Shown here: positions 7,540 to 64,000 of the stretch, in pieces
Layout of the letters: the number at the start of each line of letters is the position of its first letter
Numbering within the stretch: the stretch's first letter is position 1
Assembly: GCA_964036045.1 (NCBI GenBank)
Contig: OZ038378.1
Location: forward strand, 7,936,001-8,000,000
Length of the DNA stretch: 64,000 nucleotides
From: Eutreptiella sp. 'Long Island Sound 2002'
Taxonomy: Eukaryota > Protista > Euglenida
Direction of reading: 5' to 3'
The notes under the pieces: model-generated
What the model saw: the letters and a program-made list of their open reading frames with translations, nothing else
Told to the model about the DNA's origin: nothing
The model's database searches: none
Position numbers and translations under genes: made by a program

Positions 7540-9156
7540 TTACGACCCGTAGCCGAGGTCGGTCTCGAGCCACAGAGTCGCCAAGTGTAGGCAGTGGTCG
7601 GCCTTGCCTTCGCTGGCTTGAAGGCACTCGACAATGGCCGGGTAATTGTCCTTCTCGACGGTCCGCTCCTCAAAATACCAAATCCTAAGCTTTCCCCCTG
7701 TTGAGTCCAGGTATCCAAAGCCGTACTGGCTGCACCCCCGCATGCCATGCCCCCCGATCATGAACCCTACCTCCTCCTGCTGCCCCGCATCCTGCTTCTG
7801 ATTGCAGTGCTGGTGTCCATCGAAGTATTTCAGCCGGTCACCAATGTCGCAGCCAGGCATCCTCCGCATCGCATCGTACACGTCCGGCACCGCCATGCCT
7901 GACCCACAACCCAACCCTTCGTGGTTCCAATGCCCGAGGAGCATCACAGCCCGTGGCTTAGACCGACCCATGAAGGAACACGCCTGCTCAAAGTAGGGCC
8001 TTGTCTCTTCGAATGTGGCAGCCCCGGTGTACCCAATGAAGCCCAAGTTGCCGATCAGGTGGTACCACAGGAAATTCGTGTGGTTGTTGTTGAAGCCATG
8101 CCACTGCCGCGTGGTGTCAGGGTTTACGGCAAAGCTGAGGAAATCCGCATCGGTTTGGGGCAGCAGCGTGGACGCGACGGGGTCCTGGGCGTAGAACTGC
8201 ATCAACCCGTACCCGGCCTGGTCATGGGCATCCCCGCAGGACGGGAGACCACACACCCACAGGTCATGATTCCCGGCGACGGTTTGGAGGATCTTGCTTT
8301 TGACGTCCAGAGTGAACTGATCGAACATGGCCCGTGTCAGGCGCCCATCCTGGTCGTAGAAGTTGTCGCCCAGGATCTGGAAGAAATCCAGTGCCGGGTC
8401 CTTCGCGAGCAGATTGATCATCGCTGCGCCGCGGTTGAAAGTATCCCACCGCTCACCCCACTGACACTCCACCCAACGAGCAGAGAAGCAGGGGTCTGAC
8501 CAGATGATCCCTTTGGTTCCTTGGCCTTGCGCTGGAAGGCGCACGGTGAACGACTGGCCATTGACTGTGAAAGTGTTTGCGTGGCCGGGCTTTACTGTCA
8601 CCATCGCTGAATGCAGGACGTGGTCTCCAATCTTTGAGTATGTTGCCTCTGCAGCCTCATCTGATTTGAAAGTGCATGCAGTGTAGAGATGGCACTTGTT
8701 GCCATTACCGAGGAAGGCTCCTTGATAGAACGTGTAGAACAGGCACTGACTATCCGCGGTGCACACCTCCAAGCACGTGGCGTCATCCCCGCCAGAGAAT
8801 GTCTGATACGGCGTCTCGGTGCACGACTGCTTGGCCTGACCCAAATCAAAAGCGCTCTGCCAGCGGTACTTGAATCGCTGGCTATACGTGAAATGGAGGT
8901 CACCCGAGAGCGTTTCGTTCTGCCGCAGGCCGATGACACTGATGCGCATGCGGTCGTACCCTTTCGGCCCAAGTGCACGTGCCACGCGCAGGTTCAGCGG
9001 ATGACTGGCGGCGGGCCTGGACGATGGCAGCGCCCGAACCCAGTCCTCAAAGAAGCCGACCCCTGGTGTGGCGTGCGATCCGTTGGTGTCCAGCGCGTGT
9101 ACATCCTGTGGACCCATGAGAACAATCATGGCAACGGAGAAGAGGGTCCACAGCAT
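7540..9156 (-). CDS. Secreted calcineurin-like metallophosphoesterase (purple-acid-phosphatase-like fold) with an inserted PAN/Apple domain; intronless, 538 aa
   Basis: Motifs WSDPC, LGDNFYDQDG, VAGNHD, LLGHW and FDGHQH. Hydrophobic N-terminus MLWTLFSVAMIVLMGPQDVHA. Cys pattern C-x14-CLEVC-x5-CLFYTF-x10-CHLYTAC at about 8630-8825. Pyrimidine tract plus AG at 9198-9197 favours ATG 9156 over the ORF-track start at 9249. Confidence 0.85.
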   Translation of the reverse strand: MLWTLFSVAMIVLMGPQDVHALDTNGSHATPGVGFFEDWVRALPSSRPAASHPLNLRVARALGPKGYDRMRISVIGLRQNETLSGDLHFTYSQRFKYRWQSAFDLGQAKQSCTETPYQTFSGGDDATCLEVCTADSQCLFYTFYQGAFLGNGNKCHLYTACTFKSDEAAEATYSKIGDHVLHSAMVTVKPGHANTFTVNGQSFTVRLPAQGQGTKGIIWSDPCFSARWVECQWGERWDTFNRGAAMINLLAKDPALDFFQILGDNFYDQDGRLTRAMFDQFTLDVKSKILQTVAGNHDLWVCGLPSCGDAHDQAGYGLMQFYAQDPVASTLLPQTDADFLSFAVNPDTTRQWHGFNNNHTNFLWYHLIGNLGFIGYTGAATFEETRPYFEQACSFMGRSKPRAVMLLGHWNHEGLGCGSGMAVPDVYDAMRRMPGCDIGDRLKYFDGHQHCNQKQDAGQQEEVGFMIGGHGMRGCSQYGFGYLDSTGGKLRIWYFEERTVEKDNYPAIVECLQASEGKADHCLHLATLWLETDLGYGS

Positions 9157-9196
9157 TGGTTTGGGGCTGCCCCGGCGTTGCACAACGAACAAAGGA

Positions 9197-9225
9197 CTGC
9201 GCAAAAAGACGAAACAAAATAGACA
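9197..9225 (-). promoter_or_regulatory. Polypyrimidine tract plus AG (candidate trans-splice acceptor) for the phosphoesterase
   Basis: tattttgtttcgtctttttgcgcag, 40 nt upstream of the ATG. Confidence 0.55.
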
Positions 9226-10079
9226 CTCAGAAAGTTTTCCTGCTCCCAAAAATGCCTTGCCTCAGGGCCATGCGCCATGTTGTAAATATGGAACCAATTG
9301 GATTTGGGCCTTCTCATGCATGAGGCATTGAAAGAGGACAGTCCGTCACCTGCAAACCCGGTCCTCTTACCGCCCCCGGTGCTCTCGCATGCCATTCCCA
9401 TGCCATCGCGCATGATCCGCACACCTCGTGTGTGCGACGCTGTGGGTGTGGAGTACGTAGGTGTGGGAACAGGGTGTGCGACAGCTTGGGGATGCTGTTT
9501 GCATTGGGGAAAGATGTGCAAGCGCGTCGTGCTTCCACAGTCTCACACCCCAGACCCATATCACGCCCCCCCCCCCCCCCCTATTCCTAAAGCCAACCCG
9601 TCCCATACCCAATTCCCACACCCTCTCACAGCCGCACCCTCAAACAAGCACATGCTGGGGCTGGGGTTGGCCCAGCCATTCCGAGTTGGTTCCCATTGCA
9701 AAAAGCCGGAGCAGCAAGTCACTTGCATTAGGCCATGCTGGCTATGTCAAGGATTTTGGCTGGGCCACCATAGAGGGCTACAATCCACAAGTGCTGACAT
9801 GAGCTAACCAAAAAAATGCGCCAGCGGGGGTTTCTACAAGGTGCATGAGTTGAGCAACAGCTAGTTTAGCAGCTTCGGTCTCATTTTCGTATCCTTCTCC
9901 CCTTTGTCCACCTGCCCACACCTAGCGCACGATGGTCCGAGCTTTCCATTTCCAGGGCGTGCCGTGGAAACTCAACTGTGGTCATCAAAGGAATATTAGC
10001 CAGGCACACCACTTTTTGGCAAGTGTCTTGACTTGGCACCATATCTAGCCTCTCCAGGGAGAGAGAGAGTGTGTGTGTG

Positions 10080-10287
10080 ACGCCCAAGTATTTCAATCAA
10101 AGCTCAAACTGCGAGGTTCAACAGAGCTAGGTCTTACAATCATCAGCAAAACCATGAGTCCATGTTCTTCTGGCCTCGGTGGCAGGCCGACCACTAGTGC
10201 ACTGATTCACAGCTTTGGGATGTGGGAAAGGTCTCAGGAGCAGCAACGCAAGCAGGCCCCGCTTCCCCCCCCCCCCCCGCAGCAAAC
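10080..10287 (-). mobile_element. Short 5'-truncated LINE 3' end between two (GT)n tracts
   Basis: Flanked by (GT)n at 10069-10079 and 10288-10311. Shares the 19-mer CAAACTGCGAGGTTCAACA (10105-10123) with the similarly flanked element at 37517-37740. Confidence 0.5.
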
Positions 10288-10311
10288 TGTGTGTGTGTGT
10301 GTGTGTGTGTG

Positions 10312-12128
10312 ATCTGTACTTTTAGAGGTGGATCCTTGTGCAGCGTTGGGCTGGACGCCTCATTTGGCTCAGGTCTGCTGAGGCCTCTTTGTGACGTTGT
10401 TTCCCTCCCTTCTGCGGAATCAGAACCTCTGTATTTTGCTGGCTAGGTATCCAGAGTGTTCGCTCTCCCGTGCCTCGTCACGAAAAGCGGGCGGGCGACA
10501 TCCTCGGCCACAGTCTCCTCCAGCCCCCGTGGAACTGGGGCTGGTGGGGACGGAGGGGGGGGTGTTTTCGGCCTCGTGCGTTTGGGGCCTGGAGGGGTGG
10601 GGGGTTGGTGTGGGGACCTCAGCAGACCCGTAGAGATACGTGCAGGCCCTTGCAGGCGTGGTCGTTTGTGGGGCAGTTGTGCATGTGCAGCAAGTGGGCG
10701 CTTCCGGCGCGCAGGCACTGGGGTGCACACTTTATGGTGTCCCCACTGACAGCAGTGGCGCACTCCCCTTTGCTTGAGTGTGCACCTCGGGCACGGTGGT
10801 AGGCCATGCAGTGGGCACAGTTGCAGTTGCGGTCTGTGTGCTATGTGGTCATCAGCGTGATGTCCCAGCGCACAGCATGCTTCAGCTGTGCGCCGAAGTC
10901 TCTTGCAGGTCGTGCATGCGTCAGCAGAGTGCTGGGCACACTTTGACGGATCAGCCGGCGGCGCCGGTGGTGGCGCCCTGTGTGTGTTTGCGCGCCTGCG
11001 TGTCCCGGTGTAGGGGCGCTGTGGGAGCTTCCCATCCCCTATCACAGGGAAGAAATCAGCTGCAAAGGAGGAGCAGCCCCCCCCCCTTTGGCAAAATTGG
11101 TCTGCTCCGAGGACGGAGCCAGCCCCAACTGCAGATTCCCCTGAAGTGCACGCTGTAGTCGATGCTCCTCCACTTCCTGCGCTGTTCTGCGTGGCCTATG
11201 TGTGTACGGGCGCAGTTTGTGTATTCTGTTGAGACCAACCTTGGTGGCCCACGTGCGCTCACAGTATGCCGCTAACTGCTGAACGTGCATGTTCATGGCA
11301 CTGCAGCAGGTGAAATAGGGGCGACAGTTCAGGCCGCAGAGTGCCGGCCCCCCCAAAGGAACTAAAGAGCTGCAGCGTGTGACCACACGCGCTGGATGCA
11401 AATGGCCTTTGGTGACCAGGCGCTGCGCATTTGCCATTGCCAGTCGTAAGACCCGGCCTCTCTCTTGCACTGAAAGGGTGGTGCCCTTAAATTTTGCCTG
11501 TGGAGCGTGTGGGAGGGTGCGTTGCGCAAATTCCTCAAAGTCCAGTGCGAGTTCCAAGAACGTCACCCAGTGCAGTTCCCTCAGCCAGCATAGCAGGTCC
11601 GCCAAAAAGGGCATTTCCCACTGCCATTCCACCTTCTTAGGGGTACGCAGAAGAAGTAACCCTTTGTCTTCCGGTCTGGGGAGGGGTCCCACCAGTTGGT
11701 GGTACGGGTATTGCCGAAGCTGCTGTGAGAGGCTCGACCCCATGAAAAGCATGGGGGATTGTGTGTCTCGTAACTTGCGGGCCTGCAAAACGGCTACTAA
11801 CATATTGTGCAGAGCTGTCATGAATGCGAGCGCTGTCCCTGACTTGACGCTGTCTGTGTCTAGCTCTGGGGCCAATCCACAAAGTCGTAAACATGGGGGC
11901 CACTGGTCCATGAGGGGAAGGCCTGTGATCTGTGCTGCCGCCGTCCTGATGCCCGGCAGGTGGGTGTCCCGCACCGTACTCCAGGCTGAACACTGCCAAA
12001 AAATGTGCTCCTCGTTTTCCGGAGCATTGCCACAGTACGGGCACGTGGATGTGGCTCTCATGCCACGTTGATAGGCCCGGAGGGCTGTCCAGGTTGCTCC
12101 TGATAGGATGCCCCGCAGGATAGAGCGC
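10312..12128 (-). mobile_element. 5'-truncated LINE: post-RT CCHC zinc-binding region and C-terminal domain, ending in a (CA)n tail
   Basis: Translation LRGILSGATWTALRAYQRGMRATSTCPYCGNAPENEEHIFWQCSAW (CxxC...HxxxxC) and WVTFLELALDFE. The frame shifts at the C10 run (11077-11086) into ORF 10443-11045. (GT)n tracts on both sides (10288-10311 and 12129-12150). Confidence 0.8.
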
Positions 12129-59802: not shown

Positions 59803-60474
59803 TCAGGACTGATCCGAATAGAGCTGCGGGTTGTAGCCGGTGCGGTCGGGTCGGTGCCGCAGAGCCCCGCGCTCCGTGGCCCTTTGCAGCGCCAGCGCCG
59901 AGTACGCACGGCACGCCCGTTGCACTGCGGTCAGCCTGGGGAGCTGCGGGCCGTCGTGAGACAGCAGGTCCGCGCAGAGCGCCACGGCCTCGGCGGTCGA
60001 CAGCGTGCCCTCGTTGGCCTTGCGGACAGTGAAGGCGGGGCGCACGTCGCGACAGTCGAGCGCGATGCACCGCAGCCGCTGCAGCGCCGGAGACGCACGG
60101 AGCATTTCGGTGGCGAACTGCCACGTGGCGTCGAGAGCTACGAGGGTCTCGACGTCGGTGGGCGGGGCGCACTCGGCGGAGAGCACCGTCGCCCCCTCCG
60201 CCGGGTACAGCAGTGCACACGCGTCCGGTCTGTCGTACACGTCAACAAGTGCATTGCGGGGACAGCGCTGCCCCCGCAGCGCCTTCGCGGTCTCAATTTC
60301 CACGCGGTCGAGGCAGCCGCTGATGATGAAATCAGTTCGGTTGGCCCGTTCGCGCTCCTTCGGGTGTTGGAGCACGAGGAGTCTGCAGGGGCTGGGGAGT
60401 TTGTCCGGCGGAAATGCGTCGCAGATGCATGCGGCTTTGGGGCGGCCACAGACCCCAGTGCAGTACTCACGCAT
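59803..60474 (-). CDS. DTW-domain protein (tRNA-uridine aminocarboxypropyltransferase, DTWD2/TapT-like); intronless, 223 aa
   Basis: Motifs CxxxCGRPxxxCIC, LQHPKE, LLYP, LVALDATWQFA and TLSTAEAV. An acceptor AG at 60519-60518 lies upstream of ATG 60474; the ORF-track start 60594 is less likely. Confidence 0.88.
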   Translation of the reverse strand: MREYCTGVCGRPKAACICDAFPPDKLPSPCRLLVLQHPKERERANRTDFIISGCLDRVEIETAKALRGQRCPRNALVDVYDRPDACALLYPAEGATVLSAECAPPTDVETLVALDATWQFATEMLRASPALQRLRCIALDCRDVRPAFTVRKANEGTLSTAEAVALCADLLSHDGPQLPRLTAVQRACRAYSALALQRATERGALRHRPDRTGYNPQLYSDQS

Positions 60475-61128
60475 GTGTTCAACCGCAAATCGCACAGCCA
60501 ACCGTGCGGAGATACTCCTGGAGACTATGGGCAATGAGGGGCAGCTGAGTGAGCCATGCATGAGATGTGGGGGCTGCGGCATCACACATCGCATATGATG
60601 GTCCTATGTGGTCGTCCATCAGGGGAACATTCACCTGAGTGGGTACCACGGGGTCACACGTGATGTGGGTGAGTCCCACGGATGTGGGTGAGTCCTACGG
60701 AGCCACATATCAAGGGGGTGGGTGGGTGGGTAACACTGACGCCAATGTGTACCAGCCAGGCACATCACAGGCAAGTGCGAAGACCGGTCCACCGGTCCAC
60801 CGGCAGGACATTGTGCATCAGGTGTTATGGAGCTTCTAAGGCTGTGTGCCGCGACAACCAACGGTCAATTCTCAATACTGTTTGTTCTCGTTGTCAAGTG
60901 ACAACAGCCCTCCTTGTCCAAAATACGCCTAAATCCAAAAGAAGACTATGATCAGTATACAGAACTGTCAATGCCTGTTGAATGGGACATCTTTGCTGGT
61001 CATGATGCTTGATCTTTGAGATAATATGGCTTTCAATGGGTAGACAGAGGGCACATAACCACAAATGAACCCATTTTAACAGTCTGCATGCAACCCATTG
61101 GGAGGACAAGAAGAAGACAAAAAAGTGG

Positions 61129-61371
61129 CTGTGGGGCTGATGGCCACATGGGGGCCGTACACAACCAGCACGTTGTGGTTCTTGGGCACGTGGTGGGCGA
61201 AAGCCTTGAATCCGGTTTTGCCAGCAAAAGGGATGCCCCCCAGGCCGGCAAAGTCGAATTCTTCCCGAAATGCTGCAAAAGCAAATGCGACAGGTCCCCC
61301 AAAGAGTTCTGAATCTCAGTAGGGTAGAAGCTGGTGGCCAGCATCGTGGTGTCGGAGGAGAAGTTTGGCAC
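61129..61371 (-). pseudogene. LCIB: LCIB/LCIC-family (theta carbonic anhydrase-like) coding segment, frameshifted and apparently truncated
   Basis: VPNFSSDTTMLATSFYPTEIQNSLGDLSHLLLQHFG, then a one-base shift at the CCC run (61264-61266), then EEFDFAGLGGIPFAGKTGFKAFAHHVPKNHNVLVVYGPHVAISPT. This matches the LCIB signature GGLxGxPFxGxTGxxAxxHHVP...GPHV. The CxDE motif reads YPTE. Confidence 0.8.
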
Positions 61372-61412
61372 CTTCAAGTGTAGAAATTGTAGAAACATGA
61401 AAATCAATACCC

Positions 61413-61935
61413 CCCCCCTTCCCGTGTCCAACGATCAATTTTTGTCCTCAAAAAATACGGTCCGAACGGGGTGTACGTTGGACACGCCATTCGGTGCACG
61501 CAACAATATTGCAAAACGGCGGTAACACATCCCTAGGCACAAGACACCCACCCCATTCAAGGCACAAAGGGATGGAGGCCTCCAATTCGCACTTTTCAGA
61601 GTAGAAGCCCTTGTTGCGGTGCCGCTCCATGCGGAAAAGCTGAACATGCTCTCCGAGCTTGGGGCCCTACTTGTTCTTGGCACAGGTAGAAGTGGCAGCC
61701 CGATCTGGCTTAGGGACCGGTGGGACAAACACCGCTTGTATAGCATTCCCTCACATCCTGCTTTACAAATTTGCCCACAATTACTCACTACAACCCCTCA
61801 TTTCCCCAATCCTTTGGCCTGAAACCTCGATTCTGAAGCCCTGTACATAATTACGTACGTAATTAATTCGGTCCTAAAAAAATATGGTCCGGACGGAAGT
61901 GTTCGTTGGACACGGCATTCGTTGGACACGGGGGG
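61413..61935. mobile_element. MITE with CCCGTGTCCAACGA / TCGTTGGACACGGG termini
   Basis: Inverted termini embedded in C/G runs, with repeated ggtccg.acgg..gt..cgttggacacg subterminal motifs. Confidence 0.65.
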
Positions 61936-63060
61936 GGGGGGGGGACAAATTATGTGAGTGCCAAAAAACCGCCGCCACTCTGGGGAGGACAAGGCAGACT
62001 TGGCCATAAAAATGGCGATGGGTCGGCATCTCGTGAGGTGAATTCTCAGGCATAGAAGGCATTAGTGCAGGCTTTGTCGACGGAGGCGCCATCAGGAGTC
62101 CACACAAATCGTCATTGTGTCCCTTGGCCGTAAGCAAGGCAATGGGTGCTACCCTCCATCTTCTCACTGAAAAACATCTCATGTGTCATGACTGCATCAT
62201 CTAGGCATCTAGATACCAAATGCATAGTATCACCCATGTATGTGTATCACAAGGATTTCGTAAAGCGTCGCCATTTTGATTAAAACCGTGAGCGACACGA
62301 ATAACCTGCATGGTAATGGCTTTGTGCAACCAAAGGGTCTTGTACACGTAGAATGCCCGGGAGGGTTGTGCATTGTGGGGCTGGGGAGAGAAGACAGCCA
62401 TGAAGATGTCGGTTGCAGCCAAGGTGAACACAGAGACACAGGGTTTCCTTTTCATTTGCTTCGATGGGATTTCAAAAAGGGCCGACCAGTGGAGCAGGGT
62501 GCATACCAACCTCGCCCAAACAACCTCATAACCACGAAACACTGAAACTCACCATCTACAGGTCAAACTTTGCACCTAAAAATCACAGAGCACTCCTGAA
62601 ATACGTCCAATCTAATCTGTAAACATGGCCCTTGCACTCACTATTTGGAGTCATATAGGGGCTGTCTTGAAGGAAAAAGCCAGAGAGGGAAATCAACTGG
62701 GCATGTCTATGTCACAAACATTTCACTGCATCTGCTTGTCCACAAGCCTGGTAAAGATAGGTATCGCCATCTTCCTCATCAGGCTTTCGTGGAAAAGTCA
62801 GGTTTGAGTTGCAGTGCACTTCCCTGGAGATGGAGACGCTATCATCTGGAGACTGTTCCGTTGGGGCATTGTAGACACCCCATGCATCGCTGAGGACTGT
62901 GCACGGTGTGTTGGGGGGGTGGCTGGTATTAAATTGCTTGCCCCTATTCCTATTCGTTCTTCAGAGGGGGCATTGCATGCGTTGCGGACACACTATGTGC
63001 GAACCTTGTTTTCCATACCACCATTCGGAAATCCATCATAAGGCAAGTTTGAGCAACTGA

Positions 63061-63165
63061 GTGATTCCCATTTGTTCCACATTTCTTCATTTTGCAGATG
63101 GAGGGGGTTTCAACAATGGAGACTCACTATGGACCAGGGCCTCGTCGGCCCTTCCTTCCACACAT
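63061..63165. repeat. Dispersed repeat, copy of 27511-27620
   Basis: Direct similarity seen by eye. Confidence 0.8.
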
Positions 63166-64000
63166 TGCGTGACATGGAATGCTTTGGGATCTGGGGCATG
63201 GAGGGATCCCCACCCCATTGGGAAATTGAGGAGCGCAGAAAGAAAAAAAAAGGACTGGTTTTAGATCAGGGGGATGTTGCAGGGGCCACAATTTCGAGAA
63301 CCTGGGACCGAATGGAATCAAATTAATCAATCAGCCCATTACAGTCACCAGGGTGACAGCCTCCTGGGAGCCCTCAAGAGCGGACAGCACGACTACCCCT
63401 CCCCCATCCTGCAGACACTTTCCGACGCATAGCCCCTTCAGACCATGTGCAGTTGCATTCCACGGGCCGTGATTTGCAAACACCTGCATTGCATGGCGTT
63501 TCATACTGCGTGCCTTTCCACTTGCGGGAGGTTCCAGGATCTGTGCTGAAAGTGGTGTGCCGAGTTCATGCAGGGCAAACACCCCGTGCAAGTGCACGGT
63601 AGCCCGAGCAAAGCTAAATCAAGCAGTCCTTCCTGTGACATTCCGTCCCACACGCGCCGTTCATTAGTGAAGCAGCAGCGCGAAAGCGCAATCTATTGGG
63701 GTCCTAATCGTTGGATCAGCAGGTCGTTGGACTCAGAGCTTCCCCGTTCATCTTACTGGGCCGTCTTTTTTTGCACACAACCATAGAGATGCAGAATACC
63801 TCAAACCAAATCTCCTGCATGCTCAGGCACACTCTCACAAGTGGGTTCATGTCACCAAAACGAGCATGAGGAAGGTCATAGGAAGGTCGCCGCACGACCT
63901 CAACCGGGTGCCTAGCCCCCGAACACTCTGCAGTCAGCCCTCAGACGTGGAAGAGTATCCAGCAGTATGTATCACAGACAGCAATGCTTGCACCAACACC

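Follow-up and report, generated by a model that had tools for sequence, protein, structure and literature searches.

A probable decaying, DNA-level copy of part of an LCIB-family gene in the genome of the euglenid Eutreptiella sp.

The LCIB-like stretch and its intact relative

Towards the right end of the 64-kb stretch of Eutreptiella DNA analysed here (the window) lies a short piece of sequence whose translation resembles LCIB/theta-carbonic anhydrases, and the question is whether it is a gene in use, an exon of one, or the remains of one. The piece occupies 61132–61371 on the minus strand and covers positions ~20–93 of the 223 in the Pfam profile PF18599. Read from 61371 to 61132 it gives VPNFSSDTTMLATSFYPTEIQNSLGDLSHLLLQHFGK in the first frame and, after a one-base shift, FDFAGLGGIPFAGKTGFKAFAHHVPKNHNVLVVYGPHVAISP in the next. 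The two frames were searched separately. The downstream piece (61109–61264, minus strand) matches PF18599 (LCIB_C_CA; E=1.3e-15, profile positions 51–92 of 223) with 57.7–60.2 bits against a curated cut-off of 25, and it also matches solved structures of the LCIB family: 6kfs (2.7e-11), 9w05, and PtLCIB4 (5b5y, 3.3e-8). The upstream 39-aa piece has no match in Pfam or the PDB when searched alone. A natural in-frame copy, the protein P0001, represents the joined form; it matches profile positions 20–93 (E=1.3e-20, 74.1 bits, cut-off 25), and we therefore accept the upstream piece as LCIB as well. Judged by these matches, the LCIB-like stretch is real, far beyond chance. The initial annotation, which had reported an LCIB signature in 61129–61371 and had named an LCIB profile match for the joined peptide as its test, is upheld on both points, on the first by the Pfam and PDB matches and on the second through P0001.

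The domain is far from complete. The profile has ~223 positions and the fragment only ~20–93 of them, and neither tblastn with six LCIB proteins nor six-frame phmmer with nine proteins finds another LCIB-like segment in the 64-kb window. Profile positions 1–19 and 94–223, including the third zinc ligand, are therefore absent from it, and an exon to supply the missing CGA motif, which had been suggested as something to look for, is not found by either search within the window.

An intact relative is present in the same genome. A word search with the longest stop-free stretch returned one protein, P0001 (106 aa, 94% identical), from the ENA assembly ERZ25074135, and the only other member of its 90%-identity cluster is P0002, a protein of 342 aa. 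P0002 matches PF18599 over positions 15–221 of 223 (E=1.1e-48) and aligns across the whole domain with 6kfs, 9w05 and PtLCIB4. It reads ...SFCPDEIQNS...HFGKNFDFAGLGG...GPHVAISPSGDVGLYLRDGQEHLSPACGAC..., and CPDE, the GPH histidine and ACGAC (with the ACGA cysteine) are all kept. Its gene lies at 8813–11029 of locus L002, with an upstream exon at ~8813–9026 and the domain exon at 10145–~10830, on the same contig as the window. The window was placed on that contig by way of an intronless 263-aa ORF at 59803–60594 (minus strand) with a DTW domain (PF03942, E=7.4e-28; a tRNA aminocarboxypropyltransferase-like family); window positions 63594–56803 are 100% identical to 6792 nt of ctg10140_43x_l of ERZ25074135. 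On ctg10140_43x_l the fragment occupies 687,702–687,959 and the intact P0002 ORF 329,604–330,632, ~357 kb apart and in opposite orientation.

Comparison of the two loci by blastn gives a single LCIB-related match, of 259 nt and 97.3% identity, between L002 10127–10385 and window positions 61389–61132. The LCIB-derived fragment, as defined by blastn, a three-way alignment and the Pfam match, is thus longer than its coding part: it extends over 61132–61389 on the minus strand, and consists of 18 nt of intron tail (61372–61389) and 240 nt of exon (61132–61371). The homology opens 18 nt inside the parent intron (CAATTTCTACA.TTGAAG) and runs into the exon at GTG CCA... It closes after ...ATC AGC CCC A, where the parent has no intron and continues in frame with SGDVGLYLRDGQEHLSPACGAC. 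The upstream exon of the parent ends ...GCC AAG/GTTGG (the slash marks the splice site) and the intron, of ~1.1 kb, ends ...TTTGAAG/; with these boundaries it is a conventional GT-AG intron. Parent and fragment have the reading VPNFSSDTTMLATSF..GPHVAISP in common, whereas P0002 has CPDE and nearly the whole of the domain, ACGA cysteine included, is preceded by another exon and is represented by a spliced transcript, and the fragment has YPTE, a break in its frame and an end at profile position ~93.

These limits bear on how the fragment arose. Since it includes 18 nt of the tail of the parent intron, its template was DNA rather than mRNA. We considered and rejected a processed pseudogene (retrocopy): like such pseudogenes, the fragment is an incomplete and probably non-functional copy that lies far from the expressed gene, but it contains parent intron sequence and has neither a poly(A) tract nor a trace of the spliced leader. 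At the two junctions short motifs are repeated (TTTCTA..TTTCTA and CAGCC..CAGCC), in a way that does not match a simple microhomology join.

The same limits bear on whether the fragment could be one exon of an intact, multi-exon LCIB paralogue, with the frameshift an assembly error. The sequence at its 5′ edge (TTGAAG/GTG) has the context of a GT-AG acceptor, but that context is the copied tail of the parent intron. Euglenids have non-conventional introns, and the initial annotation had proposed an exon bounded by one; in the parent, however, the 3′ break falls where the coding sequence is uninterrupted, and the intron upstream is GT-AG, so that this proposal is not supported. The similarity does end abruptly after GPHVAISP, at 61132, and there is no GT at that point, just as had been described. 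That the deletion which breaks the frame lies in a homopolymer run would suit an assembly error, but no other LCIB-like segment is present in the 64 kb, the DTW gene begins 540 nt downstream on the same strand, and an unrelated locus has the fragment with identical 258-nt limits. We regard an exon in use as exceedingly unlikely, and the reading that we prefer is that of a truncated copy of part of P0002.

Changes at the zinc site and in the reading frame

The catalytic site has been altered in two codons. The motif in the fragment is Y-P-T-E, in the place of the C-x-D-E found in all eight aligned relatives and the CPDE of the parent, so that the substitution recorded in the initial annotation is a real one. 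TAC (Tyr) at 61324–61326 (minus strand) stands for the TGC of the zinc-ligand cysteine in the parent and relatives, and ACT (Thr) at 61318–61320 (minus strand) for the GAC of the catalytic aspartate. These differences are evident in the alignments and also in read-derived contigs, in which the plus-strand base at 61325 is C (X3, X8 and X10) and plus-strand AGT is replaced by GTC (X3 and X8). All sequencing runs were examined as Logan contigs, which show presence, not absence, and from which rare variants are dropped. The first zinc ligand and the catalytic aspartate of CxDE are thus both missing from the fragment. The second zinc ligand, the histidine of G-x-H-V, is kept (codon at 61148–61150, minus strand, by alignment). 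The third, the cysteine of A/C-C-G-A/S (ACGA), is absent, as the copy ends 18 codons earlier; the parent has PACGAC at this place. No full-length YPTE paralogue is found among the called proteins, the 90% cluster of P0001 consisting of P0001 and P0002 only, and the next relatives beyond these two (60–73% identity) all have CPDE.

Set beside Chlamydomonas reinhardtii LCIB/LCIC and the Phaeodactylum theta-carbonic anhydrases PtLCIB3/4 (PDB 5k5w, 5b5x, 5b5y), the fragment belongs to the same Pfam family, and its alignment with PtLCIB4 begins at the motif that follows the first zinc ligand and extends as far as the histidine of GxH. These are, however, complete proteins of the beta-CA fold with a Cys-His-Cys zinc site, of which the fragment keeps the histidine only.

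The order of the changes can be read from a second copy of the fragment, the one that encodes P0001 (locus L001). Three differences from the parent are common to both copies (alignment A2): a T>C change in the intron tail, TGC>TAC and GAC>ACT. Because both copies have them, these changes predate the duplication of the repeat unit in which the copies reside (see below). Others are private. The window copy alone has lost one T from a TTT run and has a synonymous GCC>GCT at 61202; the L001 copy alone has lost one TCC codon and has ACG>ACA and AAC>AGC, one of which is synonymous and the other missense.

The one-base deletion that breaks the frame of the window copy, which thus has no intact open reading frame, is the first of these private changes. 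It reduces TTT to TT on the minus strand at 61257–61258, such that AAT TTC is read as AATTC (alignment A2, column 169), and contigs from X3, X4 and X8 have an extra A after 61256. The initial annotation had placed a one-base shift in a run of three Gs; the shift stands but its site does not, since the parent, the L001 copy and the contigs of those three runs agree that the missing base is a T of the TTT run, ~7 nt from the GGG run at 61264–61266; the true reading is HFGKNFDFAGLGG, as given above for P0002. The deletion is present in the assembly and in none of the independent contigs, no matched contig from the window locus spanning 61257. Five contigs from two runs match ~2,300 nt of the window with zero differences, from which the assembly appears to be generally accurate; the verdict on the fragment is the same whether or not the deletion is real.

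Some features count against reading the fragment as a pseudogene. Of the three changes that the copies share, two hit the catalytic codons, a pattern that looks non-random if each is counted as an event of its own. The L001 copy, moreover, keeps an ORF of 106 codons with an ATG. As two events, 8 nt apart, the changes to the cysteine and aspartate codons would have a chance of ~1e-3 to 1e-2, which looks improbable; a single clustered mutation, by which they become unremarkable, is more likely and is the explanation that we prefer.

Together with the 97% identity to the parent over 259 nt and the fact that it is exactly the cysteine and aspartate of CPDE that are lost in both copies, the open frame and ATG at L001 could speak for a functional product of the fragments: a short protein without the zinc site, which might bind intact LCIB as a non-catalytic partner or dominant-negative stub, or an RNA, which might yield antisense or small RNA directed at the parent mRNA. 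The window copy is frameshifted, though, and its domain is reduced to about one third, without the third zinc ligand; there are indels among the private changes; the RNA contigs show CPDE only; and the paired codon changes may be one clustered mutation. A function of this kind is very unlikely, as is the non-catalytic LCIB-like subunit envisaged in the initial annotation, which would have to make do with ~20–93 of 223 profile positions. Very unlikely indeed is the more elaborate possibility that a stub or RNA is expressed from the fragments and modulates the intact LCIB, the shared loss of Cys and Asp having been selected before the unit spread. The fragment would rather be without function, its two catalytic codons having been changed before its duplication.

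Contigs from RNA indicate that the parent is expressed. X8, a run whose record guesses it to be RNA, contains a 494-nt contig with CPDE that departs from the window at 61374, which is what is expected of spliced parent mRNA (GCC AAG/GTG) and not of parent genomic DNA; the GT-AG intron has been spliced out in this contig. Only the CPDE version, and no YPTE, is present in the RNA-derived contigs of X8 and X10, a weak sign that the fragment is silent, given that rare variants are lost from Logan contigs.

A dispersed unit with a MITE-like element

The fragment is part of a larger dispersed repeat unit of 2278 bp (60825–63102, minus strand), recognised by blastn and pairwise alignment, that carries both the fragment and a MITE-like element; the DTW-domain ORF lies outside it, 231 nt from its border. 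A second copy of the unit is at L001 8195–10574 (contig ctg8917_29x_l, the P0001 locus), with 93.7% and 97.7% identity in two blocks, and contains the YPTE fragment in frame. The homology between the window and L001 ends at the same two points (63102 and 60825), with unrelated flanks on either side, such that the same fragment is found within the same unit at unrelated loci, as is seen in transduplicated fragments. Two assembled copies of the unit are known. There are no further copies within the window (by self-comparison), and a word search with the 113-aa ORF of the unit returned only itself. Contig depth, which is not a copy number, suggests a few more.

The borders of the unit do not resemble those of a defined transposon: neither terminal inverted repeats, target-site duplications nor Helitron ends were seen there. 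The motif CTCCAT is present at both ends; being shared by the window and L001 copies, it cannot be a target-site duplication. A Pfam search of ten ORFs of the unit found no transposase or other domain save for one sub-threshold match, in a 53-aa ORF at 62899–63057 (plus strand), to a FYVE/RING-like zinc finger (E=9e-5, 22.9 bits, cut-off 27.8). This ORF may be a second scrap of captured gene.

The MITE-like element within the unit is at 61410–61945 and is present in high copy number. It has 25-nt terminal inverted repeats that are 92% complementary, composed of a C/G run plus CGTGTCCAACGA; the motif of the repeats occurs three times where 0.42 occurrences are expected. Its position is the same in both copies of the unit. 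Some 1,900 X3 contigs were matched, and the great majority of their summed depth falls at ~61500–62012. The element begins 21 nt from the end of the homology and 39 nt from the first codon of the fragment, in good agreement with the MITE noticed 40 nt upstream in the initial annotation. A 67-nt segment of L001 (9584–9650) is missing from the window copy of this high-copy repeat, at 61744/61745. Many contigs from four runs have differing sequence just before 61744, and most members of the repeat family therefore carry extra sequence there.

Could a mis-joined read have brought the parent sequence into this locus? The contig names suggest a long-read assembly, and inside the fragment the X3 contigs show the parent version only: a 247-nt contig has the parent sequence and ends at both of the forks, at 61132 and 61377/61378. 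In X4, an independent low-coverage run from another study, however, one contig corresponds to window positions 60728–61188 without a difference, and as it crosses both the border of the unit and the 3′ junction of the fragment, a chimeric assembly of the locus is excluded. Another contig of this run is of the L001 type and continues into the shared flank, and the two assembled copies share derived mutations that are missing from the parent. The probability of an artefact is vanishingly small.

The fragment is very probably a truncated and decaying DNA-level copy of part of an intact LCIB-family gene, and neither a gene nor an exon in use. Of the origins put forward in the initial annotation it is the decaying duplicate that has held, in the form of a 258-nt truncated copy of an intact paralogue. 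We propose that 259 nt of the parent gene, comprising the final 18 nt of the intron and the first 241 nt of the exon after it, were inserted ~20 nt from the MITE-like element, probably by ectopic repair synthesis or by transposon-associated capture. While the fragment was still a single copy, it acquired the Cys>Tyr and Asp>Thr changes in CPDE, 8 nt apart, and one change in the intron tail. The surrounding 2.3-kb segment was then duplicated to at least one other locus, each copy later accruing its private changes.

Such a history is akin to transduplication of the Pack-MULE or Helitron type, or to filler DNA at repaired breaks, in that an unspliced piece of a host gene lies beside a MITE and undergoes pseudogene-like decay, within a unit that recurs where the surroundings are unrelated. 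It differs from such systems in that neither a transposase nor terminal inverted repeats, target-site duplications or Helitron ends were found for the 2.3-kb unit, of which only two assembled copies are known. The case records DNA-level capture of a gene fragment beside a MITE in the Eutreptiella genome. The fragment itself is an ordinary pseudogene fragment of minor importance, one more decaying piece of a gene in the repeat-rich genome of a euglenid; it warrants neither annotation as a gene nor citation in support of a non-catalytic LCIB subunit or a non-conventional intron.

LCIB-family genes in the euglenid lineage

The search for intact paralogues that the initial annotation had recommended yields P0002 and a second protein, P0016, in the same assembly. 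P0016 is an intact LCIB-domain ORF of 303 aa (L004 3001–3912) with no internal intron in its domain; an LCIB-domain protein in UniRef, 553 aa in length and with a long N-terminal extension rich in Ser, Thr and Pro, is ~90% identical to it. The genome of this euglenid thus contains at least two intact genes of the LCIB family, those for P0002 and P0016, with all zinc-site residues present, and for one of them there is evidence of a spliced transcript. The presence of an LCIB-type family in this lineage, to which the fragment had been taken to point, is supported by these genes. P0002 in particular may be regarded as a candidate for a euglenid theta-carbonic anhydrase.

A third LCIB-related ORF, P0027 (L005 3001–4182), has the N-terminal half of the domain as far as TGFK, where a possible GT donor marks the point of divergence, with no downstream LCIB exon within 3 kb. 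An ORF with a reverse transcriptase domain (RVT_1) is located 1.3 kb downstream of P0027, and the name of the contig gives a low coverage (11x).

An HMMER search with P0001 finds 635 relatives. The best of those outside this genome (P0003–P0015) are proteins of 500–1500 aa in which the LCIB domain occurs twice in tandem; taxon labels are almost all missing from the nearest relatives, but one is assigned to the dinoflagellate Gymnodinium catenatum. The euglenid proteins score nearer to 6kfs, 9w05 and PtLCIB4 (1e-24 to 1e-28) than to Chlamydomonas LCIB/LCIC (~1e-11). The window contains the euglenid spliced leader once, at 9210–9233 (minus strand) with a single mismatch, but not that of dinoflagellates. 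No GT donor follows the spliced-leader sequence, and ~70 nt further on is the ATG of a signal-peptide-like ORF; the sequence looks like a relic ahead of a gene.

We found no paper on LCIB or theta-carbonic anhydrases in euglenids. The value of the fragment is as a pointer to the intact LCIB genes of this euglenid, and P0002 and P0016 are testable candidates for components of the little-known CO2-concentrating mechanism of euglenid plastids.
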